Positions 13,948 through 47,210 are shown, numbered from the stretch's first letter. The stretch is DNA of 64,000 nucleotides from Phaeosaccion multiseriatum (GCA_965112735.1 OZ218958.1:2170001-2234000), one strand, 5' to 3'. The notes: generated from the letters alone by a model not told the origin. Program-made: numbers and translations.

Positions 13948-14170
13948 AGGGGCTTTCGCTTTTGAGCCGCCAGTCTTTTGCCTCTGTGAGAAGTGTAGGC
14001 ATCATCACCATCATCAATGAGACTGGAGGTCAAGGAGAGAGTTTGTATTGTCGGTATTCGTTGAGCGCCTCCACTTGGGGCCATCACAGTGCACTGTGTG
14101 AACAAGGGGGCCGTCGAGAGGCGTGCAAGGGAAGGTAGCGTGTGAAATGGTAAATTTATAATTGATGTAC

Positions 14171-14312
14171 TCGACCCCTGACACACTATCGCCCACATTC
14201 TCGATAGCGCGGGCCGATAGCGGATAGCGTGCCGGCTGGCGCCGGCCGATAGCGGATAGCGCGCCGGCTGGCGCCGGCGATAGCGGATAGCGGATAGTGT
14301 GTCAGGGGTCGA
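14171..14312. mobile_element. MITE-like element A: 142 bp, 20-bp perfect TIR, 6-bp TSD ATGTAC
   Basis: TCGACCCCTGACACACTATC (14171-14190) and its exact reverse complement (14293-14312). ATGTAC lies at 14165-14170 and 14313-14318. Internal repeats are GATAGCG and GCCGGCTGGCGCCGGC. Confidence 0.9.
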
Positions 14313-14425
14313 ATGTACACGTGTTGGTGGTGTTCGAGGATAGAGAACTGAAACTTTTCGACCGGGCCGGGGCCTCTCCCCCGGCCCCCGATTGCCCCAG
14401 TCACTTCTGTGCATAGCGCGCCATT

Positions 14426-16826
14426 ATGGCCCATTCAACTTCGTGTATAGTGTGCTGCTTCCCCTTTGGTCCCGACAGGCTGGAGTGTTGCACTCCATGT
14501 AACCACGAGGGAGTATGCTCGCTCTGCTACCTAAGGCTGCGCTTGCTCATGGGCGAGTACTCATGCGTGCTCTGCAAGACGAATATGGACCAGGTGATGG
14601 CTTGCAAACCGGAGGATGTGCGCCCGTGGGCCGACTTGTCCATCTGGGGCAACGACGCTGGGCCTGAGAACGTGTGGCACGAAGAGTCCCGCATGTTCAT
14701 GCCCAAGGCGTACAAGACGTGGTTCGTTAATGAGGTGCAGGGCGCGGGCTGTGGGGTGAAGGACTGCAACGCGAAGCCAAGGAACATCCAGCAGCTGACA
14801 AAACACCTCCGCGATGTGCATCAGAGGTCAGTTACGGCTTTGTGGTCTCGGCAGCGCCTGCGGGATGGCTCTGTCTAGACCAGAAACCAACAACCAACCT
14901 GTATTCTTCTCACAAAACAGAACACTGTGCGGCGTGTGCGTCAAGTTCAAGAAGGTGTTTCTATCGGAGCAGGAGCGCTTCACCAGGCGAGGCTTGGAGG
15001 TGCATATTACGAAAGGGAACCCCAAGGTTGGATTCTACGGCCATCCTCAGTGCGAGTTTTGCAAGACTCGATTTTACGACAAGCAGGGCCTCTTCGAGCA
15101 CCTGACGAAGGATCATTACTCTTGTCACCTTTGTGAGCAGAACGGACATCACCACAAGTAAGTGTTACCCAATCAATTTGACTGCCTCTCTCTCTCTCTC
15201 TCTCTCTCTTCTCACACTCACACACCCACTACCAGGTACTACCGCGACTACAGTGACTTGGAGAGGCACTTTCGGGCCGACCACTGGCTCTGTGAAGACG
15301 CAGACTGTCTTGCGAAGAAGTTTGTGGTGTTCAAGAACGAGATTGACCTTAAGGTGCACCAGATGGAGCACCATCCGCACATGGCTTCGGCTCTGAATCG
15401 TACGGTCCAGGTGAATTTCAGAGTCAGACGCTCCGGCGAGCAAGATGAGAGCGCGGAGCAAGAAGCGGAAGATGCCCGGCAGCAGCAGGAAGAAAACAAC
15501 GAGTGGACTGTCTCCCCGCCGCGCAGCCCCACGGCTGGTGCTGCTGCTGCTGTTGCTGATGGTGATGGTGGAGATGGAGAGGGCACGGGCGTTGATGACT
15601 TTCCATCGCTGGCAACGGGTGCAGCTAGGCAAATCGCGCAATGGGCAAGAGCCGCACAGCAGCCTGACCTCAAGTCGAAGGAGGAAGATTTCCCTGAGTT
15701 ACCGACAGCATCGGCAAAGAGTTTAGAAAAGGCGATGGCCGCCCCTCCCTCCTATCGAGCCGCTGTCAAGCCCCTTCCTTCGAGGGCAATGCTATTGGCG
15801 GGAAATGACGAGGACAGATGGTCCTACACTGTACCCCCAGAGGCGACCCTGGCTGGTCGGATGGGCAACATGAAGATCAAGGTGAAGAAAAAGAAGGAGA
15901 AGAAGAAGAAGAAGGATGAAGTAGTGGCGAAGGAGGAGGTCCAGCAGGTCCAGCAGGTCCAGCAGGTCCAGGATGTACAGGAGAAGGAGGCGACGGCGGA
16001 GCAGAAGACAGGCGTGATTGAAGCCATACAGGAGGCTATTGGGCAAGACCAGTTCCAAGTCCTAAAGGAGATTAGTGGGCGGTACAGGCAAGAGGAGGAC
16101 ATGAGCGCTGAGGAGTACTTTGCGCAAGCCAAGGCCATCCTCCCTGCGCACAACTTTGTAGAGCTCTTTGTAGGCCTCGTCAACATGCTGCCGGAGGAGG
16201 GGAAACGACAACAGCTCAAGGAGTTGTTGCAAGGGGAAGTGGTGGCGACGGGTGGCAGAAGTGATGTGGCAAGGGTAGCCCCTCCTACTGCTCCAGCTGC
16301 TCCAGCTGCTCCTTTTGTGGCGGTTACCGCAAAGAAGAAGAATAAGAAGAGGCCTGCCGCTGGGCCATCCACAGGCATTGGCTCCGCTGCTGCTATGATG
16401 AGCAGTGTGTCTCGCAGAGGGCCCATCGTCGGGTCCAAGAGGACAGGCCTCTCCATCGTCAAGGCAGCTCCCGGGGGGCAGAGAGATGGGAAGGTCGCCC
16501 CTGGGGGGCAGGGAGACGGGAGGCAGGACCTCGCGCCCCCACCAGGAATGATGCTTCGTCGGAAAGAAAATGGCGGGCTTGGGGGAGCCGGAGGAGGAGC
16601 ATTATCATCACCATCACCACCACCACCAGCACCGCCACCACCGACCGCCCACCAGCAGTTGCCAAATGGGGCGGCTGACTTTCCGGCTCTGCCCCAAGCC
16701 CCGCCCGGGTTCGCAGCAAAGACTGGTGGAGGAGGGCAAGCAGTAGCAGCACAGGCCAAAACGAACAAGAAGAAGAAGAATTCCAAGCAGAGCGCAAGAG
16801 ACCTGGGAGGCCTCTTGTTTTCATAG
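14426..16826 (+). CDS. ZNF598: ZNF598/Hel2-like ribosome quality-control E3 ubiquitin ligase
   Basis: Exons 14426-14826, 14921-15157 and 15236-16826. RING CIVC...CNH..VCSLC...CVLCK; zinc fingers GHPQCEFC, HYSCHLC and HWLCEDADC..KKFVVF; repeated DFPxL motifs. Confidence 0.9.
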
Positions 16827-16836
16827 TAACGAAGGT

Positions 16837-18327
16837 TTAAGTGGAACTCTGAGCTTGTTTGGCCCCGCCGCGAGCCCTCCCCCCTGGCTTCCCCCGCCCC
16901 CTCCCTCCGCTACTGCCTCTCTTTCCTCCGCTCCTCTTCTCCGCCGCAGCCTCGTCGCGCGATGCGGTGGCGGTGCTGCTGCTGCTGCTGCTGCTGGCTT
17001 TGGGAGCTTGCTCTTCTTGGCTTTTGGACGAGTTGCCGTGATTAATGAGCAGCAGTCGCCGGTGCGGACTGTGAAGCTTGAGGTGCGTGGTGACTTGCTT
17101 GATGGGCTGGGCAGCCATAATCTTTTCGATGGACTCCACGGCCAGCCCCAGGCAATTCACGGGCCCTCGCAGGGTGAGGACGGCAAAGTTGGCCCGGTCA
17201 ATCTGCTGCACGGTTTCCGCGGGTGCCTCCGACGTGGCCACGAGCGTTTGCGGCGCATTGCCCTCCCCACGCCTGCCCCGCTCGAAGGCCTGCCAATACA
17301 CCGTGCAACCCGTGTACTTCTGCACCTCCTTGAGCATCCCGAAGCGCTTCTTGAGCCCCAAAAGCATCTTTAGCTTCATCTTGGAGGTCCCCGTGACGTC
17401 AATCTCCTTCTCGCCTTGCTCCGCGGAGGGCAGGGGCCCCGGCAGAGGCATGGTGACGCTGCAGCCGTTCTGCATCTGAGGGGCAGGGAAAGTGGCAATC
17501 GTTTCGCCCCCTTTTTGCTCCATCACAGCCGTTGCTGTCGACGTTCTGTTTTCTGGCCTCGTTTCTTTTGCAGGCTTCTTGCTGATACTGCTGCTGCTGT
17601 TACTGCTACTGTTGGCGGTGGTAGTGGTGGTGTTGGCGCTCGGGTTCACTTTTGGGGAGGATGCATTTGTGGGCAGCACACCTTCCCCTCCGGCGTCCGG
17701 CACAGGAAATGCCTTGATGAAAAATACAGCCTCCAAGATCAGCGCGAGAGCGGAGAAAACAGCGTCCGCCTCGCCCTCCAACTGAACGTTGCCTCCACCG
17801 CGAGCTTTGCCATCCTTCGTCTGCTGCGGGACGTTGATCCGCACCCCGGTACAGGCGCTGGTAGCCTTCACCGTTGCCCCCCCCTGCCCTATGATCAGGT
17901 GCTGCCGCTTGGGGTGGATGGGAAACTCTGCCACCACGTCGTCCACCTCTGCAAGTTGTTTTTCAAAAGAGAGGGTAAGCAAGCACACTAGGGTGAACCC
18001 CCCCCCCCTTCTTGTGCACTTACCGTCGACAAGTTGGGCGATTTGTTGGTAGGCACGGTACGTGTTGAAGGGGTCGCCTGACACCACAATCTCCGACCAA
18101 GCCTGCTCCCCATCATCCCCCGGGGTGCCACCGCTTGATGCCACACTGCGGGTAATCTGTGTAGCAGTCTCCCGCTCCACCTTCCCCTTGCGCTGCACGA
18201 CCAGCGCCACATGCTCCGTGGGCACCAGGAGCGACAGCGAGAACAGATTCTTCAGGTTGGGATGGTTTAGCTGCTGGCCAATGACACATCGCCGCCGCCG
18301 CTGCGGCTGGGGACTCGGTGCCACCAT
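16837..18327 (-). CDS. KH-domain RNA-binding protein
   Basis: One KH domain has an intact GxxG loop (LIIGQGGATVK...TGVRINVP) and two KH-like segments are degenerate. There is an in-frame intron near 17949-18023. The ATG is at 18327. Confidence 0.75.
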   Translation of the reverse strand: MVAPSPQPQRRRRCVIGQQLNHPNLKNLFSLSLLVPTEHVALVVQRKGKVERETATQITRSVASSGGTPGDDGEQAWSEIVVSGDPFNTYRAYQQIAQLVDGKCTRRGGGFTLVCLLTLSFEKQLAEVDDVVAEFPIHPKRQHLIIGQGGATVKATSACTGVRINVPQQTKDGKARGGGNVQLEGEADAVFSALALILEAVFFIKAFPVPDAGGEGVLPTNASSPKVNPSANTTTTTANSSSNSSSSISKKPAKETRPENRTSTATAVMEQKGGETIATFPAPQMQNGCSVTMPLPGPLPSAEQGEKEIDVTGTSKMKLKMLLGLKKRFGMLKEVQKYTGCTVYWQAFERGRRGEGNAPQTLVATSEAPAETVQQIDRANFAVLTLRGPVNCLGLAVESIEKIMAAQPIKQVTTHLKLHSPHRRLLLINHGNSSKSQEEQAPKASSSSSSSTATASRDEAAAEKRSGGKRGSSGGRGRGKPGGRARGGAKQAQSST

Positions 18328-18422
18328 TTCAGCGTTGATGGAGCTGAAGCTTGGGGGGAAAAAGGAAAAAGATGGCACCTCAAGTATCGCCCTCATTTTC
18401 AATTTCAAACAACCACATCATC

Positions 18423-19137
18423 ATGGCAAGCTCAGTAGGCTCCATGACGGTCGAGGATTTCCTCAACGCCCAGTGTGAGAGACTGATGGCCCGCATCGAC
18501 GAACATGCGCTGGGTCTGCAGCGGAAACTTCGCGCTGAGATGGAGCAGGGCCAGAGGGAGATTGAGGCAATGCTGGCTGCGAAGGACGGGGGCGGCGGGC
18601 CATCAGCGCCAGCAGAAGGGACGAAACTGCTCAATGTCATACTGCAAGGCACCGAGGGTCCATACCGAGGATTGGCTATGGAGTTGCAGACCAGCAAACG
18701 AGACGTCCTCATCGGACGGAGTGCAGCGAGAAAATTCACTGAGACACAGTGCAGCGTGGGGAAGGACAGGGAAGCCTCGACCACACACGGCAAGTTCGAG
18801 GCCAGAAGAGGCAAGTGCTTCTACACGGACATGGGGAGCACAAACGGAAGCGTCATCGATGGGTGAGTGACGAACTGACCCCACACTGCGTCAAGTGCTT
18901 TCCTCCACCAACATTTTCCTTTCTTCCTATCCCACACTGCGTCACGCTGATTCTTGGGTCTAATGGCACACCACCCTTTCTGTATCGCACAGCAAAGAGC
19001 TGGACAAACACACAACGAGCGAGCTCAAGAGCGGCAGCGTGCTCAGGATCGGCTCAAGCCAATGGACAGTCCAGCTGGTGGAACCTACTCCTTCCGTACA
19101 AGGCGCTGCTGCTGCTGCTGGGTGGAACGTATATTGA
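18423..19137 (+). CDS. Small FHA-domain protein with N-terminal coiled coil
   Basis: FHA motifs IGRS, S..HG and DMGSTNGS. Exon 2 (18993-19137) supplies ELKSGSVLRIG. Confidence 0.85.
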
Positions 19138-19280
19138 GGAACACCAGTTGCGATGCCTCCACTAAGAGCAAGCTTCTTCGTTCCTCTTTTTGAAAATCCT
19201 CACACACCGCCGCTTTCTTCTTCTCTATCTAATGTCTATGAATTATTTGTTAACGACCAAGTCCCTCAAGATGCAACTCT

Positions 19281-20509
19281 TCAGAGCTCGCCGCAGTCGC
19301 GGATCACAATGGTCTTAGAAGTCCTCCCGCTGTTGCTTCCGTACTTCTCAATTTCGTCGATGACGTCCATGCCCTCCACCACGGAGCCAAACACGACCTG
19401 TGGCGCAGAGGGGGCATGGGGACACGCGGCGAATAGAATGTGGGCATTGTGCACTCCCCTTTGGTTTTCGGTCGGAACTGCCGGCGCAGACTTACATGCT
19501 TTCCGTCAAGCCAAGGCGTGACCGCGGTGAGGATGAAGAACTGAGATCCGTTCGTGTTGGGACCTGCGTTATCGTAGAGCGTAGAAAGGATATGCACTGA
19601 GTACTCGACCACCCCCCCACACACACACCACGAGGGTGCAAACAAATGGACAAGCCTTCTCCGTACTCACCGGCATTGGCCATGGACAGCTGGCCCCTGG
19701 CAGTGTGCTTGAGCTGGAAGTTCTCGTCGGGGAAGGTACGGCCGTAAATGGACTCTCCGCCCGTGCCGTCTCCGCGTGTAAAGTCGCCACCTAAATGCGT
19801 TACAATCCCACACTTGGTTAGAGAACAAAGGCCTCTATCCAAAAAAGGAAATCCCTTCGCATCTTACCTTGGCACATGAACTCTGGAATGACCCGGTGGA
19901 AGCTGTGCGAGATCAGAGGCAGAAGCAGCAGGTCACAGATTCCTTGAGATGCAAGGCCTATCATTTCTACACTGATGTCCCTCGACGCACCTCGACCCCT
20001 TGTAGCCCTTGCCCGCCTCCCCCGTGCACAGCTGGCGGAAGTTCTCACAGGTCTATGCGGATTGAGAGACATGTGTGCATTAGCCACCAAAGCAGGCTCT
20101 CAACAGGAGACGCGCCCCCCAAACATACCTTAGGGACGACATCAGCATTCAGCTCAAACACAACGCGCCCAGCATCAGAGCCTCCGACGTCGATATCGAA
20201 GTAAACCTGTTTATCACACGGATTCCCGTCAGAAACACTGCCGCGCCTCCTTTCGCCGCGGAACTCGGCCTACCTTAGGGTTGGCTGCCATCTGCATCCC
20301 CGAAGATCCAGACTTGGAGGAGGATCCTCTGCTTGTAGCGGGAGACGCGGTGCGCATGAGACATCCCCGACTGAGAAAAATCTTGCATGTGACCGCCCCA
20401 ACACCTACCTTCCAAACGCTAAGGCGCGGCCAAAGGCATTCGGCGCCACGAAGCCGTGCACGGAGGACACGGTGGCATACACAACTGACAGGAATGAAAT
20501 GCACCTCAT
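19281..20509 (-). CDS. Cyclophilin-type PPIase, probably plastid-targeted (8 exons)
   Basis: The spliced protein contains [52 protein letters not shown] and WLDGKHVVFG. The N-terminus [19 protein letters not shown]|FVAP is a signal peptide + Phe motif. Confidence 0.93.
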
Positions 20510-20644
20510 CTTCTTTGGTACAGGGTGGGGTGTAGACGCAAAAGCAAAGGGCGAGGGAAATGTGGGGAGGTGGGAGCAGGGATTTGGCGACGACCGGGTA
20601 TTCGTGCACACACTTCCAGTTTCAGATTATAAAAAACGTAGTAC

Positions 20645-20699
20645 GCCGGCTGACGCTGGCTGGGGGCGCCGGCGATAGCAGATAGCACGTCAGGGGTCA
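20645..20699 (+). mobile_element. Decayed right end of a MITE-A family element
   Basis: GGCGCCGGCGATAGCAGATAGCACGTCAGGGGTC aligns with the right end of element A (GGCGCCGGCGATAGCGGATAG..GTCAGGGGTC). Confidence 0.7.
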
Positions 20700-21225
20700 C
20701 ATGCAAACGTACAAACCCACACAATCACACTTTGCACACACATCGACACACACACGCACACAATAACACTTTCACTTTCTTGATCTCTCTCTCTCAACCA
20801 TTTTGAACTACCGCTCCCGGGGTCGACCCCCCTTTCCTTCTCCCCGGGGTACAGACTACTAGACACAGCGGCAAACGGAGGGCAGGGTTATAGCTGGCAT
20901 ATGGGCAGAGATTGGGAGGGCCGGCGCTCTATGTAGTTCACACTCCCCCCCTTCACTCCCTCCCTCCCTCGCTCACTTACTGGCTCTCACTCACTTGTTC
21001 ACACTCACTCACACACTCACTTCAGCCAAGATACCTATTTGCGTCCACGGGAAAGTCGAGAAATGATCAAGTTCGGAGGGGGTGGAACGAAGACCCATCA
21101 ATCAGCGTTTCCGAAAGTCTCGCATTCCGCTTAGACGAAGGTGCATTCTCACGCACTTCTCATCTCTTCGGCCGCGGGTCGCCACCCCCTCTGCTGCGTG
21201 TTCAACAGGGCAGCAGACCTGGGGC

Positions 21226-22183
21226 TTACGAGCTCGATGTCTTTGCTTCTTCCGAGTCGTCTTGTCTACTTGTTGGGCTTCTTTTCCGCTTGCCTGCTTG
21301 TGTTCCATCTACCCTAAGGCCGTCCATGCTGCTGTCTGCCTTTGCGTGGGGGGCCTCTTGTGTGCTTTCTGCCCCCGCCACACCACCCCCGCCGTCTCCC
21401 CCCTCGTGGTGCGGCCGAGGTTCCTTGGAAAGAGACTCGAGCTCCCTAGTCACGTTGGCTCTGGCGTTGGCCTCGTAAAGGTCCCTCATCTCTTGCGTAG
21501 CGTAGATGTACTCTTTCGCCAGGAAGGATGCGAGCACCGCCGCCCTGCCCTTGTCCCACTCCTCGTTCGACAAGTGCCCATACTCCTGCCGGACGGTGCG
21601 TGTGTACGCATCGTATGCCTCGTTCTCCTCTCCCAGAATGGCCATATCCGCGTCAAGGAAAAGCAGTAGGTCCCCCCGCTCCTCGCCCCCTTCCCCTTCC
21701 GGTTGCGGCTCTACTGCATGGCTCTTCGTAGCGATTATGTAGTTGAAGACCAAGTCCGCGTCCTGCTGGCCCTGCCCTGCGTCCTCGGCAAATTCTCGAG
21801 ACAACTGCGCACTGTCCTCCTCGTTTGTCTTGCTCCTCGCATCGTAAATGGCACTACACGAGTGTATTTCCCGGCACACAAGAAACAGCGAGAGTCAGCG
21901 CTACGCAAAGAGGGCAAGGCGATGAGCCTTAACCTCATGTCACTCACTCGTGAAAGAAGACGGCGAGCTTCACTATCTCTGGTCTGCTCAGCAGCTCGTT
22001 AACCTCGTCCAGGGTCGAGAACATGTGCTCCAAATGGGTAAGCGAGTGGTAGTGCCTGGTACTTGTGCTGTACATCTTGCTCAGCCGCTCCCACCATTCC
22101 GTCTGCTCCTGCTTGGAGACCTCGAGGTGCTCACATAGCGTCTCCCATTCCCTTTGGCAACGCGTCTTCTCACTGATTGACAT
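21226..22183 (-). CDS. Metal-dependent HD phosphohydrolase (COG4339-like)
   Basis: RHYHSLTHL, FFHD (joined across an intron), AIYD...NEEDSA, IIATKSH, FLDADMAILG and VRQEY. The 3' end is uncertain. Confidence 0.85.
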
Positions 22184-22513
22184 CTTTTGGAAAGACAGAT
22201 AGAGGGAAGAGTGGCGGCGTCAGACACTGGACTGCAGCTTCGATCCGGATCGCCTTACCCCCCCCCCCCCCTGTATAAGCCTCCTCGAGTGGGGGGGTCG
22301 GGTCCGGGCTCAGGTGCTACTTGAGCCGTCAGCAAGTTGAGTTTGGGTTCGGCTTCGTCGGCAACTTCCTAAATAATTTCCTTCTCAATTTCAAAATATT
22401 GCAGTTTCAGTGTCAGTGCGCTTTCCTATTTTGATCGGGTCTTGCTTCTCGGGAATCGCTAATTTTTTTTTTTTCATCGCAGCGAAGCGCTCTCTCTGGT
22501 GCACTGTACGGGG

Positions 22514-23982
22514 ATGCCGCCCACGGAGCAGCAGCACCCGGTCGCCAAGGACCAGAAGGGCTGCTGGCTCTTGCGCCCTTGCGCCGCGTCTACTGCTGCT
22601 GCCGCTGACACCGGTGGGCCCACCGGCTTAAACGGATTTTTCGCAGCCGTGCAGGGAAGTGCTGCTGCTACTCCGCATTTGGCGATGGTCCCCGGTGCTG
22701 CTGCGGGGGGTGGGGACTGCGCCAAGCTCTATGCTCAGCGCCAGGGGGGTGGCACGGACGGGGCGGCGCTTGCTGCAAACAGTGGGGAGAACACGTGCCA
22801 CAGAAGAAAGATACTGGAAAATACCCGAGAGAGAAGAGCGAATGTGAAGCGGCTTCGGATCATGGTATCAAAGCGTGAGACGTACGCCATAGATGGCCGA
22901 CGTTTGGCAGCTGTGCTTGCCTCGGCGCCTGCAGGCAAGTCTTTTCTTGGAGGGGAGGAAATCTTTGTTCAACCTCACCTCACCCCACCTCACCCCCCAC
23001 CCCCCCCCCCTATTCCTTTCTGTATGAAGTCAAATTTCTGCGTTGCGCTTTTGTCCCTCTTTGGCGCTGAAGCTAACCTCTTTTCCTTTCTTCCCTGAAC
23101 AGAGGACATTCGGCGCTTGGTGGTCGAGTGGTTCATCCTTACTTCCCAAGATCATTCCTACTCACGCGAGGCGGTGGCCGTGGCATCCAACCTCTTCGAC
23201 CGGTTCCTGGTGCAAGAGTTTGGCGATGGAAGGGGACTGGACTATACTTCTGATGCTGCATTCTGGCGCACCATGCAGAGGGTCGCCGTGGTGTCGCTCG
23301 CCCTGGCCATCAAGATGGAAGAGCGTTGGCGTCAAGACGCGTCCGTGCTGTGCACCAGCTTCCGTAACCGTCTGCCTCCGTGTGACATGGATGTGCACGA
23401 AGCCACGCTGCTCGAGAAGGATATTCTGACGGCGCTGGACTGGCGCTTGGCCCCGCCGACTGCCTACGAGTTCGTCAATCACCTGATGGGGCTGTGCAGG
23501 CTCAGATTGGAGGATGGACGCTCAGTGTCCGTACACAAGTATTCTGGAAGGGGGGTAGGAGTAGAGGAGGAGATAGAGTTGGATCTTGCTGTCATATCTA
23601 CGCATGCCTGGGATTGTATTGACTTGTCGTTCTACGAAGCCCACCTGGTGTGCATGGGAGCTCCCCTTGTTGGGTTCGGCAGCATTCTCGTGGGCATTAG
23701 CGTCGCCAAGCGCGAAACCCAAGAGGGACAAGACGGACGGCAGAAACGGAAGCGGTACGTCTGCCGAACCCCCTTTGCTTTGTTGGTGTAGTAGTATCTG
23801 CGTGTGTTGCTAGCCGTCTAACACAGTGTTTATTATTCTGCAGGTACGAGTCGTGCGAAAGGGAGGTGCTCGACATGGCCGCCAAGTGCAAGCTGTCGCA
23901 GCGCGACCTCCACGAATCCGCTGAAGCCCTGCACGCGCTGCTCATGCCCTCTGCTCACCAATTTGAGGAGAGGCAATGTGAG

Positions 23983-24029
<47 letters not shown>

Positions 24030-25350: not shown

Positions 25351-25581
25351 GGCAGCAGCAAAGCAGCCTGTCTGTCGCCAGGGGCGGGCAGATCCTGCTG
25401 ACCACCCCGACGTGGAAACTGAACGATTATTTCCCCAGACGCGCCAAGTGAGGTTATTCAAGTCAGAGAGAGAGAGAAGAAAACGCTGCCGAATAGCCTG
25501 CCAGGGGTCGACATGGGGGCTCGCATGAAGGTCGCAAAGTTGCGTTGATGGTTGGGAGAGGGGATACTACTTTCGTCCCGA

Positions 25582-26403: not shown

Positions 26404-26897
26404 AAGACCTCTGGCGGGTGGCTACTGCGCCGTCTCTTACCACTGCCCACAGCCTCTGTGACAAGCACACGTCAAGACGATGCGAGGGAGCCGACCGAGC
26501 GAGCGGGCGAGTAGGCCATTGAAAGATTGACATAGACTCTCTTTCGCTGGGCACACCCTCTCAAGCGTCCCAGAAATTCAGCATTCGCTTGGACGAGACA
26601 AGATTTCGAGCCTCCTCGCTAGACGGAGGCCTCTCTGCAGTATGAGTTCAACGTACATTAGAAGGGAGAGGGGCGATTGCACCTTAGGAGGTCGAGAGTC
26701 ATGCGAGAAAACACAACAGAGGACTATACATTGTACACAACAAAAAAAAAATCACAGTGTACATTGAAGAAAATGGAAGGAAGTGGGCCTCCCCCCCCCC
26801 CCCAACCAGGCCAATTTGCTGCCTTACTGTCCCAAAGTCCTCACCCTCCGTTCGTTGACCTCCTTTTAATTTTTTTTTTTGCTCTCTCTGCGTGAAA

Positions 26898-29800
26898 ATG
26901 TGGGAATACCTTGTGGGTGGAGGCGTCGCTGCAGGATCCCTGCTTCTTGCAGCGCGTGTGTGCTGGGCAAACCGGCGACAGCAGCGGCTTCGAAGTCGAC
27001 GAGGAAGCACGGACAGTGGTGATACGCTACTTGGCGTGGTGAATGAAATGAGGCTCGGAGAGAACAATTGCTACTCTCTCCCGCTGGAGGGGGCCCCGGG
27101 AAACTGCTCGTCCGACATGCAGGTCACAGCAGAGGCTGTATCTGAGAACATTGCGTTTTTCACTTTCCACCGTGAGCGGCAGGAGGCAGGGCAAGACAGG
27201 ACGCCCGCGAGGAACTTGAAGCGGCAGCGAGCGCCAGCGGGACCGAATAGAAGTGTGTGGAAAATTGGACGAACGCGAGGCTACAATTGCCGGCTCATGG
27301 CGCTCTCCCGATTCAAGATTTGGTGGATGAAGCCCGCGCACTTTTGTCGAGAAAGGGACGTCCCCCCCGAGACGGTCATGCTCCTCTGTCGAGTTGACGA
27401 GCAGCCCGGCCTCGCTTCGTACAGTGTATTTATCCCCATGCTTGACGGCACAGCGCGCTGCCACCTTCGCGGGTACAGGCACGGGGGCATTTGGTCGTCG
27501 GCTCCGTCCGACCTGGATGGGCTGGAGCTGGTGGCGGAGACTGGAGATTCCCAGACGCCTCTACCCCAGAGCTGCACAGGCTTGTGCGTCGGCGTCGGGT
27601 CGGACCCTTACTTGCTGCTGCAGCAAGCCTTTGAGAAGGTCAGGGAGCACCACAGTGCCATCAGCAGCAGGGGCGCCTCTCCCCGAAGCCGCAACGGCGG
27701 ACACGCAGCCGAAGGAGAAAGAGGAGGAGGAGGGGGAGGAGGAGGAGATGACCATTACCAACTCTCTGCCCAAAGCAACGGTAGCCCTGGAAAGACCTTA
27801 ACCGAGGGCGGCAAGCAGCCCACCAAAGCCGCCACCGCAGCTGCTGAGGGTGCCAAAGGCCAGGACTACGGCTACGCGGACGGCTTCGGCTGGTGTACGT
27901 GGGACTCGTGCTACACGTCCGTGGACCACGACAAGGTCATAGAAGGGCTGCGTAGCCTCGCCGACGCCGGCTGCAGCCCCAGGTGGGTGGTTCTCGATGA
28001 CGGCTGGCAGAGTGTGGGTAATCCCGAGGCCAATAATGGGGAGCAGTGGCGGGACCGCATGACGGGCTTCGCCTCCAACCACAAGTTCGCGCGCTTGTCT
28101 GACACCGTCGCGGAGGCCAAGGACACGTACAGAGTGAAGCACTTCTTCGTGTGGCATGCGGTGCTCGGCTATTGGCTGGGCGTGGACGCCGACCAACCGG
28201 CCTTTGCCCCACTGCGGGCCCGCTGGGCAGGCATGTACGTGCCCCCGGGCATCGCCAAGTCAGATCCTGACTTTCAGCGCCTGCGCCTTGTCAACAAGTT
28301 CCTCTTAGAGCCTTTCAAGGCCATGCGGAGACGCTTCGGCTTTGGGCTCGTGCCGCCCGAGTACGTAGGACTGTTCTACGACGAGTACCACAGGCAAGAA
28401 AGAGGTCCCTCAGGCCAAGATACGAGGGGAAGGATGATGCAGTCGATAGCAGCAATCACCCACCTACCCACTTACCTCTCATATTCTCCAATCCATTTTT
28501 CTCCTTCCAGCTACCTCAAATCCCAGGGAGTGGACGGGCTGAAGGTCGACACACAGGTATCTAACCCAACCCAGTCAGTCCAGCCTATACCCCATGGGGA
28601 AGGACGACCAAGAAACGCTCGTTCTGCCCGCTGCTCTTTCCTGCCCTCTCCTGCTAACAAGCCAAGCGCGATGTGGTTTGGCTTCTCCCCTTCCCCTTTG
28701 TCGTGGTCAGGCCATGCTGGGTACCCTGGGCTCTGGAAACGGCGGGAGCGTGCACGTCACCTCCGTAGCACAGGCTGCGCTGCGGTCGAGCGTCGAGCGC
28801 CACTTCACAGGCGGGCAGAACATCATGCACTGCATGTGCCACGATAACCAAATCCTGCTGCCAATGGCGGGGCTGTACCACCGGCAGCAGCAGCAGAAGG
28901 AGGAGGGGGGAGGGGAGGGGGAAGGTGGCAGAGGCCCCCCCGGTCCCTTTGTTCGGGGAAGTGACGACTTCTACCCTAAGGACAAGGCTGCACACGGCCC
29001 CCACTTGTACGCCAACGCCTTCAACGCGCTTTACATTGTGGGCTGCGGCCTCTCTCAGTGCTGGGATATGTTCCAGACGTCGCTCGGCAAGGAGAGCATG
29101 ATGCACGCCGCCGCACGAGCCGTCAGTGGTGCGTACGTGCGCGACCCTCCTTCCCTCCCTCCCTCCCTCCCTCCCTCTTTTCGCACAAAAGGAGACCCTG
29201 GCCTGAGCCTAAACCCCTTTTCCCTCCCCGCATGTCGCGCTATGCATGCATGTGAATCCAAACCAAACCGCAGGAGGGCCAATCTACGTGAGCGACAAGC
29301 CCGGCTCTTCCAACATGGCCGTGCTCAAGAAGCTCGTGCTGGAGGACGGAAGTGTGCCCCGGCCTATGCAAAACGCCATGCCCACCGTGGCTTCGCTGTT
29401 CAACGACCCGCAGCACAACGCCGAGGAGCCCTGCCTCTTTCTGTGGAACCGCAATGCTGCCTCGCCGGGTGAGAGGGAGGAGGAGCAGCAGCAGCAGGAG
29501 GAGGAGGAGGAGGAGGAGGAGGAGGAGGAGGAGGAGGAGAACGAGGAGGAGAACGAGGAGAACGAGGATGGGAAGGAGGAGGAAGGGGAAGAGAAGGGGG
29601 AGAAAGGACAAGAAACAGCCCCATCTACTGTCAGCAAGAGAAGCATGCTCAAGTGTCCCTCCCCTCCCTCCCTCCCCTGCCCTCCCCTCCCATGCTATGC
29701 TTGCGCTGTGGGAACAAACGAGCGCAGGGCACGGAATCCTCGCGGTGTTCAACATCTACGGCAGCTCCTGGGACCAAAAGACGCGGGCCTATGAGTTCGT

Positions 29801-30455
29801 CAAGGGCTCGGCGCCACGGAAGGGGGTGACAGCGTGTCCTACCCTGTCGGCCAGGGACTGCTACTCGCTGGCCACGTCTCACTCAGAGGGTAACATGTAC
29901 GTCACCTACTTGCATCGCCAAGAGCACTTCGTGGCGGGGGGGCTGGATCACAGGGTGGAGCTACGGCCGCTGGGATGCATGGACTTTGAAGTGGCAATGG
30001 TGGTGCGGCTACGACTCTTGAGGGGGCAGCAGCAGGCGGAGCTGTCGGACAGCGACAATGGCAAGCACACGCAAGTCAGCGTTGCCGTCATTGGCTTGCC
30101 TCACCTGTACAACTCGGGCGGAGTCATTCAAGAGGAGGAGGTGCTGCAGGCCAGCGGCAAGAGGCTGCCTGACGGTGCCGCGGAAGGTGAAGGCTCGGCA
30201 CTCCGCGTAAGAGCGCGAGGAAGCGGAGTACTGCTTCTCGTGTGCTCTGCGCCCCCTCAGCGCGTGACGCTCGACGGACAGGAGGCAGTCTTCACCTTCA
30301 CCCGCCAGAGTCCGAGCCATAGCCCTGCGGCTCCTTCTTCGGCCCCTTCCAGCACGTCCCCTCCTCCCGGGGGGCATGCAGCGGGGAAGCTGCAGCTGGG
30401 GCGGCTCACAACGACTGTGGATGGCGGGGGGGGTGACCTAATCTTTGCATGGTGA
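26898..30455 (+). CDS. Raffinose synthase / seed-imbibition (Sip) family, GH36 alkaline alpha-galactosidase-like
   Basis: RFKIWW, FGWCTWD, LDDGWQ, WHAVLGYWLG, DGLKVD, CMCH, RGSDDFYP, WDMFQT, HAAARAVSGGPIYVSDKPG and AVFN occur across exons. A (GAG)n tract lies in an intron at about 29470-29727. Confidence 0.92.
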
Positions 30456-38590: not shown

Positions 38591-38676
38591 GCTGGATGTG
38601 AAGGTTCCGGCATCCAGGGGGGGGACACATTTTTGCCTAAAAGTATCAACCATCATCCCCATACGAAGAGGCCGCG

Positions 38677-41600
38677 ATGAAGCGCCCGCTGCAGGTCGCG
38701 ATGGTGATGCTGCTGTCGACGACCTCCTGCAGCTGCCTAAGCGGCGGCAGGAGAGGAGGAGGAGGGGGAGGAGGAGGAGGAGGAGGAGGAGGACGGGAGG
38801 GAGCAGTTGCCTACATTGGCGCGCCTACATGCACACCTCGAGCTGAGCAGCTCAGTTCAAGGGCCAAAGGAGGCCGTGCTTGGACCTACGCCCAGCGACG
38901 GGCTGTGTGGCAACCGCGGAGGGCGAGGAGAAGGAGCAGCGAGTGCTGGGCGAGCATGGAGGATGCAATGCTGGGCTTGGGGAGTAGTAGCGGCAGTAGC
39001 AGTAGCAGCAGCACGGCAGCCACAGAAGGAGGCAGCAGAGAAGGAGGACTGGGCGAGGACGGGAAGATTGGGCTGCCGACCGTGTCTCTTGCTCGTCCCT
39101 CCCCCAACAGACCGTGCGAGGCGAGTAATGGCCGCCTACTGACACTCCGGCCGACCTCTTCCCAGGACCTGCGCCGTGCCGGCCTCCCCGCCATGCTGCC
39201 CAGCGGGTCCATTGCGGTTGCTGCAGATGCTGCGGACGACCCCCAAGGTGAGAGGAGGAGCTGCGTCTGCTGCGTCTTGCTTAATGTCTGTAAGCGCCAA
39301 CACTCACGAAGTTATGTGTATGTCATTGATTGACCGCCCTCAGGAGAGACGCCTCTGGCGGGAGTGGCGCTCATTTCGCCCGTGGCAGGGGGCTTGGGCT
39401 CCTCCGTCTCAACCTTTGAGTACGAGATCCGAGTGTGGAGTGAGGAGCAGGCAGCGGGCGGGGGGTGGGGGGCGATAGCGCATGCCGTGACTCACGACGT
39501 CGTGAGCAAGTACCTCAGCGACGGAGCTCGCATTCGGCAGCTGCAGGTGCGAGCAGCAGCAGTTGGTGATACAGTAGGCGTGTCCCAGCAGGAGGCCACC
39601 ACGTTCTTCAAGGAGCACGGCCTCGTACAGGCGGAGCAAGGGCAGGGGCAAGGGCAGAGGCAGGATGGCGAGGTCCTGCTCGTGGGGACATTGGAAAGCG
39701 CCCTCACTGAGGTGGAGGCGCTGCTTGGTAGTACAAGTACTGGTACTAGTAGAAGTAGCAGTGAGGACAGCAGCACCGCCACAGGGGCCCAGGCGGCGCT
39801 GGCCACTCTCCTGAACATCAAAGCGCGCCTCCTGCACGACGCTGGGCGTCTCGAGGATGCCGTGGAGTGCTACTTGCAGGCAGGGCTTGCAGACCCGACC
39901 AGGGGAGACGTGTTCCGCTCGCTCGGGGGCGCGTACCAGTCGCTCAATCAGCCGCAGATGGCCTTCGCCGCCTTCCAGCAGGCTATCGACAAGGACAGCA
40001 CGGACTGTGTGGCCTATCTCAAGCTCGGCTTCCTCTACGAGCAGCTGGCAGTGGGCAAGTATGAGGAGGCGGGTGACCATGCCATCCAGTGTTTCCAGTA
40101 CTATCTGTTGCACTCGGGCATTGAGGACACCGACGTGCTCACCCGCCTCGGAAACCTGCAAGTGCGCCGTCTAGAGCCCGGCCAGGTGTGTGTGCGTGTG
40201 CGTGTGTGCGTGCGTGTGTGTGAGAGAGAGTTTGTGTGTCTGTGTTTGAGTGTGTGTGTATGCTTTCACTCGCCCTGTGCTCTGCTGCCCTTCTCACTCT
40301 GAACCATGCCGTTGTGTTTTGCCTGTCGTGGCGTTGGCTTTGGCTTTGACTCTCTCTCGAACAGGCCGTCAAGACATACGAGCGGGCCCTCGCCGTGGAC
40401 GGAGATATCCCCAACCTTTGGTTCAACCTCGCCAACGCACACTTGAAGCTGCAGAACAAGGACAAAGCCACGGAATGCCTGCGCAAGACGGTAGAGCTTG
40501 ACCCGGTAAGTAGGGCACCTCTCTCTTGGGCGACTGAAGAAAAGCGGAAGGAAGAAAGGCAGAAGACAAAGAGTATAGTTTGCAAACGCTCCCCCCTCCC
40601 CCGCACTCTTCTCCCTCCCTCCCCCCCCCCCCCACTCTCTCTCTCACACACACACGCACACGAACACGCACACGCACAGAGCATCACAGCGGCCAAGTAC
40701 CTGTTGGCCTCTGTGAGCGGCGACGACAGCGCAGTGTCTGAGGAGGACCAACACAAGTACGTGTCGGAGCTGTTCGACTTCTTCGCAGAGAGCTACGACG
40801 ATCACATGCGCAAGAAGCTGCTCTACACGGGGCCACGCATCGTCCGACAGACCATCAAGGTAAGCGCTTACGGGGATGGTGCCCATGGGGCGGTGGGGGG
40901 CGGTGAGGTGATGTGATTGGGTGGCGGTGAGGTGATGTGATTGGCAGGGCCGGCGCTTCGTTCCTCACTCACACCTGTCCTCGCTCGCTCTCCCTCCCTC
41001 CCGCCTCCCGGCTGGCTGCGTGTGTACACCTCACACCTCATACCGCACACAGGACCATTACAACGAAACGTACCTGAGCCTGCCCCAGGCCGACAGAGAC
41101 GCGCACTTCGCCGCCCTCCCGCTGGCCGTGCAGGAGGAGCAGGGCGGGCCCGGCGTGCTCTCTTGGCTCAATAAGTCTCTCGACATACTGGACTTAGGCT
41201 GCGGGACAGGCCTGGTGGGCAGTTGGCTGACGGACTACGCCAGAGAGGCCGTGGGGGTGGACATCAGCGACAAGATGGTCTCTATGGCCACCAAGAAGGT
41301 TGGTGCGCGTGCGTGCATGTCTTAGTGCCTTTCTACCTTCGTCCTTTGGTTGTTTGCCTTCGTTGTTGGCTGTTGGTTGGCGGCCAGCACGCACTCGACA
41401 CTCGGCACTCGGCACTCGGCCTTGACCGTCGCACAAGTCTTGGATGCTCCCCAAGTGTGCTCTGCTGCTTCTGTATCACCAACTGCTTCCTCGCCGCCTC
41501 GTGCCTGCTGCTCCCACCGACGGACAGGGGTGCTATACAGAGCTGAAGCGAACAGACTTGGAGGCTTACCTGCAGGCGGAGGCCTCCAAAGACGAGGGAG

Positions 41601-41962
41601 AGGGGCAAGGGGGGGGGAGGAGGTCCTTTGACGTGGTGACTGCGGTGGACTCTCTGCAGTATGTCAAAGGGCTCGAGCGCGTCTTCCCCCATGTTGCGGC
41701 TCTGCTGCGACCCGAGGGGATCTTCGTGTTCACCGTAGATAGGATGACCAGTGATGACGACGGCGATGGCAGCGGAGGGGACAAGGATGGGAGTGGGTAT
41801 CGGCTTGAGGAGGAGGGAACCTTCTCATACTCGCGGGCCTACTTGGAGCGATTGACCGCCGAGGCTGGGCTGGAGGCTGTGCAGTTACGAGAGCACTCCA
41901 CTCGGGTGGAGCGGAACGATCCCAAGCCAGGCTGGCTCGGGCTGCTGCGATTGCGGCGCTAG
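38677..41962 (+). CDS. TPR-repeat class I SAM-dependent methyltransferase (COG4976-like)
   Basis: Several TPRs (GRLEDAVECY, FRSLGGAYQ, WFNLANAH), YVSELFDFFAESYDDHM, LDLGCGTG, GVDISDKM and FDVVTAVDSLQY. Confidence 0.85.
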
Positions 41963-42356
41963 CTCGGAATGCCCAGAGGTGTGGGGGCACAGAAGCATTT
42001 TTTTATTTTGATGTATCGTACGATAGAACACCAGACGGACTCAACACCAACAACAATCCAACACTTAATATTAATTAATAATATTTGCGTGCCGTTACCC
42101 TCCTCTATTGCAGCGTTGGCCTGCCTGCAGCATTAAGTGTTGCGGTTGCGAAGATGAGCTGGCTCCCCCACCTGCTGTCCATCCACTCGGCATCTCAAGA
42201 CCCACCTCAGCCTGGGCAGAGGGCAGAGAGGAACTGCTCCACCACTTACATGTATGCTTTCGAACAACTAGTGTCTCGCTTCCTTCTTGTGCGTTCAGTG
42301 CTTCCTACTACTGTCCCACTGACTACTGGCTGCTGGACCAGCCCCCCCTGTGTGTG

Positions 42357-45300
42357 TCACTGTCCAACTGACTGCTGCTGTATCACCAACTGCTCGTCCA
42401 ACCTCCCCTCCAGCACCTCTAACTCGTGCTCCAGGTCGCTGCTCTTCGCACTCACGAGGCTCAGCAGGGTCACGCTCTGCTCCAGGTGCTGGCACGGGGT
42501 CCTCAGGGCTTGGCTGCTCAGCTGTTGCAATCAATGGTACAAGAGCGGCCGTGGCAAGCGTGTCATACAGAGGGCAGGGACGGAGGCTTGTTTTACACTT
42601 TGGTGTGGTGGTTGATTCTTCGAGTGTATCACACACACACGAGGCGACAGACAGACGGACAGATAGACAGACAATACAGAGAAAAAAAAGAGAGAAAGAC
42701 AGAAAGACAGACAGACAAGACAAGAGACACACACAAGGCGACACACACACACACACACAGGCCTTACTACCTACCTCCTTGGCGAGGGCCCTGCAGTCCT
42801 TGTCCACGCCCCCCCCCTCCTCCACAGCGGCCAAAAGAGAAGCGAAGGAGGCGTGCATGCCCACAAGCCTACGGTAGCTCTCCACCGCCTCCGGGGGGGC
42901 CTCCTTCGGTGGGGTGGGGTGGAGTGGAGGGTGAGCAGGAGGTGCGAGATGGGAGAGGGTGGAATGAGCAATCACGATGAGAGGCAGCAGTTCACGAGGA
43001 CGGGCAGATAGCCACAGAAGCGGGAGGGGTGGAGAGGGGAGGGGAGAAGTCTCACTGCACCACCACCAGCCTGCGCTGCCCCAACCAACACACGAGCCAT
43101 TATTGTTGTGAGTAGAGAGGCCTCCTCCCTGACTTACTAACCTTGGCCATGGCGGACTTGAACAAGAGGTCGTCAGCCTCCACCTCCGTCCTGCCGAGCT
43201 CTTCGCGCAGACTCGCGCTACTCCCTTGGCATTCACGCACCCTCATGGCCTGACTCGCCACGGCCACGTCCTGCGCACGCGAGGAACGGCGCGTGGTGGG
43301 TGGTCAACACAAGTCTTTCCTTCCTTGCATGCGACTGCCCTGCCCTTCGCCTCGCTTTAGCCCCCCCTCCCTTCCCCGCCTCTCTCCTCTCCCCTCCCCC
43401 CCCTTCCCCTACCCCCTGCTCCTCTTCTATCCCCTCCCTACCTGCTCGTTGGCCGCAGCCGTCATGTCCGTGATCCTCTGCTGCACGCTCTCTCTCGACA
43501 CGCGAGGGCCGAGCTTCTCCACTGCGGGCACCAAGCGCTCTCGAAGAAGCCTCTTGTTCCTCTTGATCTGCCGTGCGAGGCTGAGCATGGCCGCCTCTTT
43601 TCCCTCTGTTGTGCCGTTTGTGCCTTCTGTACCGCGCAACTCGCACACCGTCTCGAGGCATCGCTCCATGCGTCGCTCGTGCGCCCCTTGCTGTGCTCTG
43701 CAAGCGTTGTGTGTGTGGGGAGGGGGGGGCAAGAGAAGAGGGGCAAGGGTGTGAGGAGAAGTTAAAAGTCTGGCAGCAATTGCAAGCCCTCCTCTCCTCC
43801 CCACCCCTTCCTGACCACTAACCTGATGGCCTGCACAATCCCCCTATTCTTGCCCTCCCACTCCGTGCTCCCTGTCCGCAGCAGCCTCCGGGCCCTCTCT
43901 CCGCAGCTCTCCTGCAGGCTCCTGACCTGCTCCCCCCCCTCCCCCCTCCCTCTTGAGAGGGGCTCCAATGCCTTGACCCTGCTTGCCACCTCCTCCTCAA
44001 GAGTTTCCGCTTTGGCGTGCAGCCCCACCAGCTCGGCCTCCATCTGTGGGTGTCATGTGTTGTGTGTGAGGGGGCATACATTGAGACACACAGCACAGAC
44101 GAGACAAAACGAGACAGAAAAGGCGCGGTGAGGTCGGTAAAGCCACCACAACATATGCACACACACACACACACCATCTTGGTGCTCGTTGAAACGTTCT
44201 CCATCCTCTCCGACAGTTCCGCGACGGCCTGAGCTTTCAGCCTGACAGTCTCTTCCAAGGCGTCAGCCTCTAGCGATGACACCTCTCGCTCCGGCCGGCG
44301 AGCGGCTGTATCACCAACTGCACAAAGAAAAGCAACAGAGCAGGCGCAGGCGCGGGTGAGACGAACAACATGCGTGTACCTACCCAGCCTTGTGACAAAC
44401 TCACTCACTCGCTCACTCACCCGGCCGGTCTCTGGCTTGTCTGGCTTGCTCCTCCACACTGTCCAGGAGCGCCGCAAAACTCGGCACCGGCAGGCCCCCC
44501 TCCCTCCCCTTCTCCTCCCTCCCCAGCGCGGGGTGGCCGATGCCAACTCCTCTGCTCAGCCCCAGCTCCCTCCACTCTCCCCTCCCCTCCACGCCCCCTG
44601 CCGCAGTCCTACTGAGCTGTGCAAGAGACTGGCGGAGCTCCATTCTAGCGCGGGCCGGCAAGGTTGGTCTATCGCTGAAGCGGCTGTAGAGGCCCGAGCT
44701 GCAGAGCTCTGCAAGCCTATCGAGTGCGACTCCTTCCTGCAGCTCGTGCGCTGCGCTCTTCAGCGGCAGATGGGCCGACGCCTTATCCGCCGTCACCGCT
44801 GCAGCCTCGTCGTATAGTGTCGAGTAGGCCTCTCGGACTCCTTCCTCCTGCCCCCCCCGCTCCTCCTCCTCGTCGCTATGGTCGTCCCCCCCAGACTTAC
44901 AGCCCCTCTTGGTGCGTGTGCGTGTGTGCTGCTCCCCATCAAGCAGCCTCACGCGTATGAGGCTCTGCACCAACCACAGGAGCAACTTTCTCGTGGACGA
45001 CTCAAAGGGAAAGAGGATGCTGCAGGGGCAACAGGGAACAAAAACACAGCAAGATCACGACTAAGGCAGTCAGCACCATCATTCCACGCCCTCCCATCGT
45101 GCGGTGCGCATACCCTCCCTCCCCTTACCTCTCGTACGACAGATGCTCCGGGTAGCCCGCAGCCACAATGCCCTCGGACAGACGCAGGCAGCGCCGTTGG
45201 CGGGCGGCAATGTCTTCCGGCAGACCGAAAGGAAACTGCGCGAAGAAGGAAAACACCCCGACCATATCCAGTCAGTCCTCAGGGCTTCAGCTGCTGCGGT

Positions 45301-46306
45301 AGCGCTCTGGTGGCTGCTGAGCTCGCGCTCGCTCACTCACTCACTCACTCACCCACCCACTCACTCACTCCATCACTCACTCACTCACTCACTCACTCAC
45401 TCACTTACTCACTCAGTCAGGCAGTCAGTCAGTCAGTCAGTCAGTCAGTCAGCCAGTCACTAACTCACTTACTCACTCACTCACTCACTCACTCACACTC
45501 ACTCACTCACTCACTCACTCACTCACTCACTCACTCACTCACTCACTCTCACTCACTCACTCACTCACTCACTCACTCACTCACTCACTCACTCTCACTC
45601 ACTCACTCACTCACTCACTCACTCACTCACTCACTCACTCACTCACTCACTCACTCACTCACTCACTCCCTCACTCACTCCCTCACTCACTCACATTGAC
45701 CCTGCCTCTGCTGGTGAGAGCGAGCATCTTCGCGCAGGCCTCCGCCAACAAGTCCGTGCTAAATGCGCTCAGCGCTGGGACCCGGCGCGTCAGTGAGCTG
45801 CGAGAAGGAGCAAAGGAGAGATTAGAGATTCGAACAGCGGCATCCTCTTTGTCCACCTTCCTTCTCTAGTCGACTTACCAGCCCAGCTGCTCCATGGCAA
45901 GAAGCAGAACCTGAGAAACAAAGGACATAGAAGAAGGAGAGTAGAAGACGAGGAGAGTATGTGTGAGAAGAGAGGAGGAGGAAGGCGGAGAAGAGAAGGA
46001 GGGGGTGAGTCTGAGAGAGAAGCGAGACAGTGAGGATGAGAGAGAAAGAGAAAGAGAGAGAGAGAGAAGAGCGAGTACGAGAAGAGAGAGAAGAGAGAGA
46101 GAGAGGAGAGAGAGGGAGAGAGAGGGAGAGAGAGACAGAGACAGAGACAGAGACAGAGACAGAGACAGAGACAGAGAGAGAGTGAGAGGGAGAGAGAGAG
46201 AGAGAGGGAGAGGGAGATGGAGAAACAGAGAGAGAGAAGAACAAAGCAGGAGAAGGAGAGGACAGAAAGGTTTAAGGCATGCCTGGTCTGCATGAGGCTT
46301 GTCCAT
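42357..46306 (-). CDS. CCDC22: CCDC22 (Commander/CCC complex subunit)
   Basis: The hand-spliced protein HADQVLLLAMEQLGC...LSAFSTDLLAEAC...LPEDIAARQR...AGYPEHLSYESILFP...LLLWLVQSL and the C-terminal SRESVQQRI...LGRTEVEADDLLFK...AVESYRRLVGMHASF follow the CCDC22 N- and C-terminal patterns. Confidence 0.85.
45332..45694. repeat. (TCAC)n/(TCAG)n tetranucleotide microsatellite in a CCDC22 intron
   Basis: Direct reading; it generates a spurious (THSL)n ORF. Confidence 0.95.
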
Positions 46307-46426
46307 TTTTTTGGGGAGGGGGGTTGTTCCGTGAGGCCGATGTTTTGATGTTTTACTCTTAGACAGATGGCACTCAACAGTCCACGACTGTTTTCGATCT
46401 AAGCGGTGTGCTCTCCCTCCACCCCA

Positions 46427-46713
46427 TCGGCCCTGGAAGAGGTTACAGTATTCGCCGACCATAATCAGTAATCAGGCCGGCTGGCGCCAATAATCAGTAA
46501 TCAGGCCGGCTAGCGCCCGTCATAATCAGTAATCAGGCCGGCTGGCGCCGGTCATAATCAGTAATCAGACCAGGCTGGCGCCGGCCATAATCAGTAATCA
46601 GGCCCGGCTGGCGCCATAATCAGTAATCAGGCCGGCTGGCGCCGGCAGTAATCAGTAATCAGGCCGGCTGCGCCGGCCGTAATCAGTAATCTGATAACCT
46701 CTTCCAGGGCCGA
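46427..46713. mobile_element. MITE-like element B: 287 bp, 19-bp perfect TIR, 6-bp TSD ACCCCA, internal ~31-bp tandem array
   Basis: TCGGCCCTGGAAGAGGTTA (46427-46445) and its exact reverse complement (46695-46713). ACCCCA lies at 46421-46426 and 46714-46719. There are 7 full and 1 partial units of ATAATCAGTAATCAGGCCGGCTGGCGCC(GGCC). Confidence 0.92.
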
Positions 46714-47210
46714 ACCCCACGGGATGGAAACATGGAAACCCCCTAAGTGGTGATGGATGCGAGTTTAAGGTCGGAGTCTGTCCAAGTGTGGCATGGTGAG
46801 AGGTGTACGCTGTGGTCAAGGCCTCTTTATGGCCAGATAAGAAGTGATTGCAGTAGCTGAAAGGTGAGGGACGCGCCCACCTACTATGAGTTTCAATTTC
46901 CTCTGCCGAGTAGGTAGCAAAGACATTTCCACCCCAAACCACTGTTGAACATGCGCATCGTGTTGCCCTCGTCGAGACAAGTCGAATGAAAAGCCGGCAT
47001 CGTTGCCTCCTGCAACCTCCATCAAGTTCAGTTCTATGGCCCTGCAGCGTGGAGGCTCCGGTTCCTGCTTGCGTAAGGGCCATGCGGGTCTTGCGTAAGA
47101 GTGTCTTGTTGCAGCCCAGAGGGCCCTCCCTCAGCTGAGTTGAAGCAGCAGCTTTGGTTACGCGTCCCAGGTAGGGTTGGAAGGACTATTGGTCCCCAGA
47201 GATCAAAGCC

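Follow-up and report, generated by a model that had tools for sequence, protein, structure and literature searches.

Two short, complete elements, A (14171-14312, plus strand, 142 bp) and B (46427-46713, plus strand, 287 bp), lie in a 64-kb stretch of Phaeosaccion multiseriatum DNA (GCA_965112735.1 OZ218958.1:2170001-2234000), hereafter the window, in which positions are counted from the first nucleotide. Because they combine terminal inverted repeats (TIRs), a target site duplication (TSD), small size, an absence of coding capacity, and dispersed decayed copies, A and B are very probably miniature inverted-repeat transposable elements (MITEs), i.e., nonautonomous DNA transposons with TIRs, and belong to two related families; their mobility is deduced from structure alone. 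Both elements were delineated from the sequence, a scan for TIRs and TSDs, the layout of the internal repeats, and folding. A first-pass annotation of this DNA had gone further and proposed an undescribed transposon superfamily or system, a claim that was not established, given two TSDs and neither an autonomous copy nor a transposase in the window. A and B are thus a well-documented pair of new MITE families, and a new transposon system is not demonstrated.

Element A starts with TCG and ends with CGA, and its 20-nt TIRs (left, 14171-14190, plus strand; right, 14293-14312, minus strand) are perfect, the two arms matching at 20 of 20 positions. Directly outside the TIRs lie the two TSD copies, exact 6-bp direct repeats of ATGTAC (14165-14170 and 14313-14318). 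Twelve nucleotides separate the left TIR from the internal array (14203-14292, plus strand), which opens with a solo heptamer, GATAGCG, and, after a further 6 nt, continues with two units, each made up of a GATAGCG doublet and a 16-nt GC-rich module, before a final doublet runs into the right TIR. Seven heptamers are exact copies of GATAGCG, and an eighth, the variant GATAGTG, coincides with the inner 7 nt of the right TIR, while the inner 7 nt of the left TIR are its inverted copy. The two 16-nt modules are exact copies that start at 14231 and 14263, a spacing of 32 bp, and the array as a whole amounts to 2.7 units. Across the plus strand of the window GATAGCG occurs 10 times, with seven occurrences in A, two in one remnant (see below), and one elsewhere. 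Element A is intergenic, located 224 bp beyond the stop codon of a metacaspase open reading frame (ORF), and as a single strand it is predicted to fold far more stably than shuffled sequences (z = -6.0).

Element B likewise starts with TCG and ends with CGA, its perfect 19-nt TIRs (left, 46427-46445, plus strand; right, 46695-46713, minus strand) match at 19 of 19 positions, and exact 6-bp direct repeats of ACCCCA flank it as TSD copies (46421-46426 and 46714-46719). The left TIR is followed by 16 nt and then by the internal array (46462-46693, plus strand), in which eight TAATCAG doublets alternate with seven GC-rich modules at a period of 29 to 33 bp, mostly 32 bp, equivalent to 7.5 units. 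Fifteen of the heptamers are exact and one reads TAATCTG, the last doublet (TAATCAG TAATCTG) ending one base from the right TIR. All 15 plus-strand occurrences of TAATCAG in the window fall within B. Three of the seven modules match the 13-nt core given below exactly and the other four carry one or a few changes. The single-strand fold of B is also far more stable than those of shuffled sequences (z = -7.7). Two large microsatellites lie just upstream of B, one of approximately 93 copies of CTCA (45328-45694) and one of approximately 114 copies of GA (46013-46237).

The TCG...CGA termini and the perfect 6-bp TSDs (ATGTAC and ACCCCA), both noted in the first-pass annotation, were confirmed from the sequence. 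The two TSD sequences are unrelated, and no shift of the element boundaries yields a TSD of a different length, since the base outside each 6-mer differs between left and right. Terminal bases 1 to 3 and 5 to 7 are identical in A and B, with position 4 being A in element A and G in element B; for two unrelated 7-mers, such 6/7 identity is expected by chance about once in 750. Both interiors are built from tandem units of approximately 32 bp, each consisting of a heptamer doublet and a GC-rich module of 13 to 16 nt that is common to both elements. The annotation had described this module as identical in A and B beside an interchangeable heptamer. The arrangement of two heptamers plus a GC-rich module held, as did the family heptamers GATAGCG and TAATCAG, whereas the full 16-nt module, exact twice in A, is exact only once in B, and the exact common part is a 13-nt core, GCCGGCTGGCGCC, found twice in A, three times in B, and nowhere else in the window. 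When up to two mismatches were allowed, two remnants gave the sole matches to the 16-mer outside A and B, at 47218 and 20645. Counts in the window show no enrichment of either heptamer outside the elements. In the predicted folds of both elements the TIRs pair with each other and neighboring modules pair, while the heptamer doublets stay in loops. Neither A nor B, at 142 and 287 bp and with repeat-built interiors, has any coding capacity. Taken together, the common TSD length, the 6/7 terminal bases, the 13-nt GC core, and the 32-bp unit length make the relationship between A and B well supported. The earlier view of them as nonautonomous members of one superfamily therefore stands insofar as they are nonautonomous TIR transposons that are related to each other; the superfamily itself is not assignable without an autonomous copy.

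Two scans of the window returned the same pair of elements. When exact 10-mer inverted seeds were extended outward and a flanking direct repeat was then sought, A and B were the sole matches with a direct repeat longer than 4 bp. When exact TSDs of 3 to 10 bp were required beside TIRs with no more than two mismatches in 14 positions, A and B alone were returned, both with a 6-bp TSD. Mononucleotide shuffles produced 0.23 hits per window at this loose threshold; the arms of A and B themselves pair without a mismatch across 19 to 20 nt. Matches to each TIR at up to three mismatches numbered three to four in the window versus 0.01 expected in shuffles, and matches to the GC module numbered seven versus 0.10 expected. 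Output of a generic inverted-repeat search of the window was dominated by CAG/CTG repeats.

Decayed A-like sequences were also found in the window. The best preserved (47211-47267, plus strand) is the right half of an A-family copy, 91% identical to A across 57 bp, in which one module (two mismatches), two exact copies of the heptamer, the variant GATAGTG, and the terminal bases survive but no left end. A solo A-like left terminus (47498-47517, plus strand), with three mismatches in 20, is followed by an unrelated interior. Further upstream, a decayed A-like right end (20645-20700, plus strand) still shows a stretch resembling the module, two heptamers that read GATAGCA, and a degenerate terminus, which the GATAGCA heptamer directly adjoins. 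A possible further A-like right terminus (25490-25511, plus strand; 18 of 22 positions matching) is weak. These three or four remnants are all one-ended, hence none yields a TSD, and they document repeated insertion of the A family in this region. Self-comparison of the window identified the A family as the sole dispersed repeat besides simple repeats, and no second copy of B was found in the 64 kb. The complete elements and the A-like remnants all sit between genes, with B and the remnants at 47211-47267 and 47498-47517 located 0.35 to 1.4 kb upstream of an ORF at 47867-50692.

The latter two remnants, located in the intergenic region that also holds B, share the same orientation but occur in inside-out order, right half before left end, with 230 bp of unrelated DNA between them, and may be two separate truncated insertions or the product of a rearrangement. 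Approximately 120 bp downstream of the remnant at 20645-20700, a 12-nt palindrome (20819-20830) reads as if an A-type right end (its final 8 nt) and an A-type left end (its initial 8 nt) overlapped on a common TCGA. No 6-bp direct repeat flanks the palindrome, and it may have arisen by chance in G+C-rich DNA. A 19-mer resembling the B TIR (22000-22018, minus strand, two mismatches) was rejected as an element copy. The 19-mer belongs to a gene carrying an HD-type metal-binding motif, in whose first coding exon it is in frame, and no other element feature accompanies it. We treat this match as chance, surprising as it is at our own estimate of about 1e-3.

The heptamer was suggested in the first-pass annotation to be a family-specific site, and its role as a putative family-specific transposase-binding site is modestly supported, short of proof. 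Both TIR arms of A carry GATAGTG as their inner 7 nt. In B, the heptamers have been conserved better than the modules, with changes at 1 of 112 heptamer positions versus approximately 6 of 91 module-core positions (Fisher p = 0.047), and the short spacers in the array vary freely. A period of 32 bp corresponds to about three turns of the helix, and successive doublets would therefore face the same side of the helix. A heptamer swap beside an identical core would need just one founding unit per family, because slippage and unequal exchange homogenize arrays; given this homogenization, identity of the core alone does not demonstrate that the core has a function.

MITEs with internal tandem arrays resemble A and B in their short TIRs, fixed TSD, near-gene sites, decayed copies, and tandem units. 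A and B differ from them in the combination of TCG...CGA termini with a 6-bp TSD, which matches no superfamily compared by description, and in their two-part array, where the heptamer doublet is wholly family-specific and the 13-nt GC core is constant. In Ac/Ds, En/Spm, and P elements, subterminal transposase-binding motifs are repeated inside the ends, at both ends and in both orientations, and are related to the inner TIR. The likeness of A and B to these elements is one of function-like layout only. The heptamer copies of A and B form a one-directional 32-bp array adjoining the right TIR and, unlike the motifs of these elements, are interleaved with a GC-rich near-palindrome.

We propose that a transposase or integrase whose gene lies elsewhere in the genome would recognize the ends of A and B and insert the element at a target site cleaved with a stagger of 6 bp, whereupon gap repair would create the duplication. 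The family-specific heptamers would probably serve as putative subterminal binding sites of that enzyme. The internal array would grow and shrink through slippage or unequal exchange, consistent with the different unit numbers of A and B. The GC near-palindrome may have been inherited from a common ancestor and kept uniform by turnover of the array, or it may be a structural or host-factor site.

Several observations weigh against the identification of A and B as a pair of related MITE families with heptamer binding sites. With just two complete copies present, the 6-bp TSD is documented by n = 2. The 64-kb window yielded no autonomous element, and Pfam detected in it no domain of a transposase, integrase, or reverse transcriptase, the scan covering stop-to-stop segments of at least 110 codons, of which 213 of 261 passed a composition filter that excluded low-complexity segments. 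The contrast between heptamer and module is borderline and was seen in a single element, B, and the link between heptamer and TIR, clear in A, is only loose in B. Finally, searches of metagenome, viral, and prokaryote collections and of the literature gave no copy beyond the window, which is weak evidence because these collections lack this genome.

The searches of these collections were as follows. Matches in metagenomes to two GC cores spaced 15 to 22 nt apart were obtained at 17 loci, all of them tandem repeats without the heptamer and TIR architecture, and were rejected as unrelated; they lie on contigs of 64 to 75% G+C that, judged by composition alone, are most likely bacterial. No match was returned from viral contigs for either TIR, the A unit, or the double-core pattern, or from prokaryote genomes for the A unit or the B unit. 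A full-text literature search for five motifs from the window was likewise without a match. The Logan contigs carrying the closest ClpP sequences were rejected as close relatives, since nothing in them aligns beyond the ClpP exon, which has 74% nucleotide identity.

A and B were compared with transposon superfamilies on the basis of published descriptions and general knowledge, not against Dfam or Repbase models. TSDs are 8 bp in hAT elements, with rare exceptions, 2 to 3 bp in CACTA elements, and usually 9 to 10 bp in MuDR elements. They are TA in the Tc1/mariner group, 4 bp in piggyBac, and 0 to 4 bp in the Harbinger group (PMC10045372). The 6-bp TSDs of A and B are not those expected of Tc1/mariner, PIF/Harbinger (3 bp), piggyBac (TTAA), CACTA, or hAT. 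MuDR had been set aside by TSD length in the first-pass annotation, which was not borne out, since its TSD is quoted as 4 to 10 bp (PMC10045372); the 6 bp of A and B fall within this range, although far from the usual MuDR length. Introners of the pelagophyte/prasinophyte type, which insert within genes, carry or co-opt splice sites, and in Aureococcus have an 8-bp TSD (10.1101/2022.06.06.494994), were rejected as an explanation, as A and B are intergenic, their TSD is 6 rather than 8 bp, and no GT..AG pair at their boundaries restores the target.

There is about an even chance that A and B are merely new families of an already classified superfamily able to give 6-bp TSDs, such as IS3EU/GingerRoot, a Polinton-like group, MuDR, or an atypical hAT/P-like group. 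A 6-bp TSD is usual in IS3EU/GingerRoot and in Polinton, besides falling within the MuDR range (PMC10045372), and such TSDs are generally tied to integrases of the retroviral-like, IS3, and IS481 types (10.1101/2024.09.03.611062). Terminal dinucleotides, moreover, vary among lineages of this integrase-related group. IS3EU and GingerRoot resemble A and B in both the 6-bp TSD and the possession of TIRs, but the IS3EU termini are "always" TA..TA and those of GingerRoot TA..TA, occasionally TG..CA (PMC10045372), unlike the TC..GA of A and B. Dada elements come near in TSD length (6 to 7 bp) but have short subterminal inverted repeats in place of TIRs and insert into tRNA or snRNA genes (PMC3706591), whereas A and B have perfect terminal repeats and intergenic sites; no tRNA gene or Rfam family was found anywhere in the window. 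The dismissal of IS3EU and Dada by their ends in the first-pass annotation thus agrees with both published accounts (PMC10045372, PMC3706591). Polinton/Maverick elements and polinton-like viruses (PLVs) share a TSD of 5 to 6 bp and the possession of TIRs with A and B, but their TIRs are hundreds of base pairs long and their bodies are 14 to 40 kb with PolB, rve integrase, and capsid genes (PMC12220804), compared with TIRs of 19 to 20 nt in elements of only 142 and 287 bp. No Pfam family of these types (PolB, rve integrase, capsid) was found in the window, and no transposase is present there by which A and B could be placed.

We consider it unlikely that A and B represent an as yet undescribed DNA-transposon superfamily or deep lineage, characterized by its TCG..CGA ends, modular subterminal arrays, and 6-bp TSD. 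An accompanying scheme for an undersampled stramenopile-like protist, in which the family-specific heptamer would set the recognizing enzyme variant and the GC near-palindrome would have a common structural or host-factor role, is in our view similarly unlikely. In its favor, the termini and TSD of A and B fit none of the superfamilies for which published descriptions were compared. The lack of a match in the metagenome, viral, and prokaryote collections and in the full-text literature points the same way, as does the poor sampling of the host lineage, in which the best identity is approximately 50% for the metacaspase and 30% for the raffinose synthase. However, nonautonomous elements with unfamiliar ends are common in undersampled genomes and most are later placed in known superfamilies, and the proposal would have to draw on only two TSDs, with no enzyme seen and a comparison made without Dfam or Repbase.

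It is highly improbable that A and B are end-relics of far larger integrated elements of the Polinton/PLV or giant-virus type, internally deleted down to both ends. PLVs often have 5- to 6-bp TSDs (PMC12220804), and a giant virus integrated in Chlamydomonas reinhardtii, with a 6-bp TSD, ACC..GGT termini, and an integrase that is unknown, leaves deleted relics with intact termini and 6-bp TSDs (10.1101/2024.09.03.611062). That virus resembles A and B in its 6-bp TSD, terminal motifs, and short relics, but the element itself spans hundreds of kilobases and carries viral genes, and no sequence or gene link between it and A or B was found. The interiors of A and B are regular tandem arrays, not unique-sequence remnants, and their TIRs are far shorter than those of such elements. 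Two families and several remnants share the 64 kb with ordinary genes, Pfam detected no gene of viral type in the window, and the module pattern was not found in the viral contig collection.

It is scarcely credible that A and B are immobile, hairpin-forming minisatellites whose 6-bp repeats and inverted ends arose from local duplication or chance, for although mobility is read from structure and the window is very rich in tandem repeats, at two independent loci perfect 19- to 20-nt inverted ends stop exactly at 6-bp direct repeats of different target sequence, and A-like ends are dispersed at three or four further loci against a shuffle expectation of 0.01.

If A and B are indeed MITEs, they would be the sole interspersed repeats in a gene-dense stretch from a protist lineage whose mobile DNA is almost unknown. 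With approximately one insertion per 10 to 15 kb near genes, they may be a major shaper of intergenic DNA. TSDs of 6 bp are produced by few groups of eukaryotic DNA transposons, and the ends of A and B match none of those compared. An autonomous partner would either extend a known integrase-related group or define a new one. The two-part array, with its variable heptamer and constant GC core, would further allow specificity sites and common sites to be compared between families from sequence alone.

The window itself is gene-dense eukaryotic nuclear DNA of 55 to 64% G+C with very many microsatellites and some introns, and no part of it resembles human DNA or a virus of animals, people, or crops. 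Pfam domains encoded in it include Myb, KH, ZNF598-type, DnaJ, DDHD, metacaspase, raffinose synthase, cyclin, and ClpP, together with GPI2, cyclophilin, CDC45, Nse2-type, and EF-Tu-type domains, among others. A ClpP exon, searched singly and not joined to other exons, encodes a product 83 to 87% identical to pelagophyte, brown, xanthophyte, and diatom algal proteins. The less conserved proteins of the window had best identities of 30 to 52% in a collection of 5.8 billion clusters, the metacaspase and the raffinose synthase among them. Look-ups of exact products for three ORFs of the window found none on record. The genes look most like those of stramenopile (ochrophyte) algae, and the host, as judged from them, is probably a stramenopile alga of a poorly sampled lineage.

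Repeats also occur within or beside several ORFs. An imperfect AGG array of approximately 369 copies (8317-9440) lies inside a long ORF (7572-9404) that has no Pfam match. Homology to raffinose synthase is split across two ORFs in different frames (26892-28847 and 29352-30455), and the GGA/CCCT-rich stretch between them could be an intron or a repeat-filled insert. The ORF downstream of B and the two neighboring remnants (47867-50692, 941 codons) shows a weak bZIP match below the Pfam cut-off, and its CTG/CAG runs at 48771-48861 and 50371-50584 form long imperfect inverted repeats.

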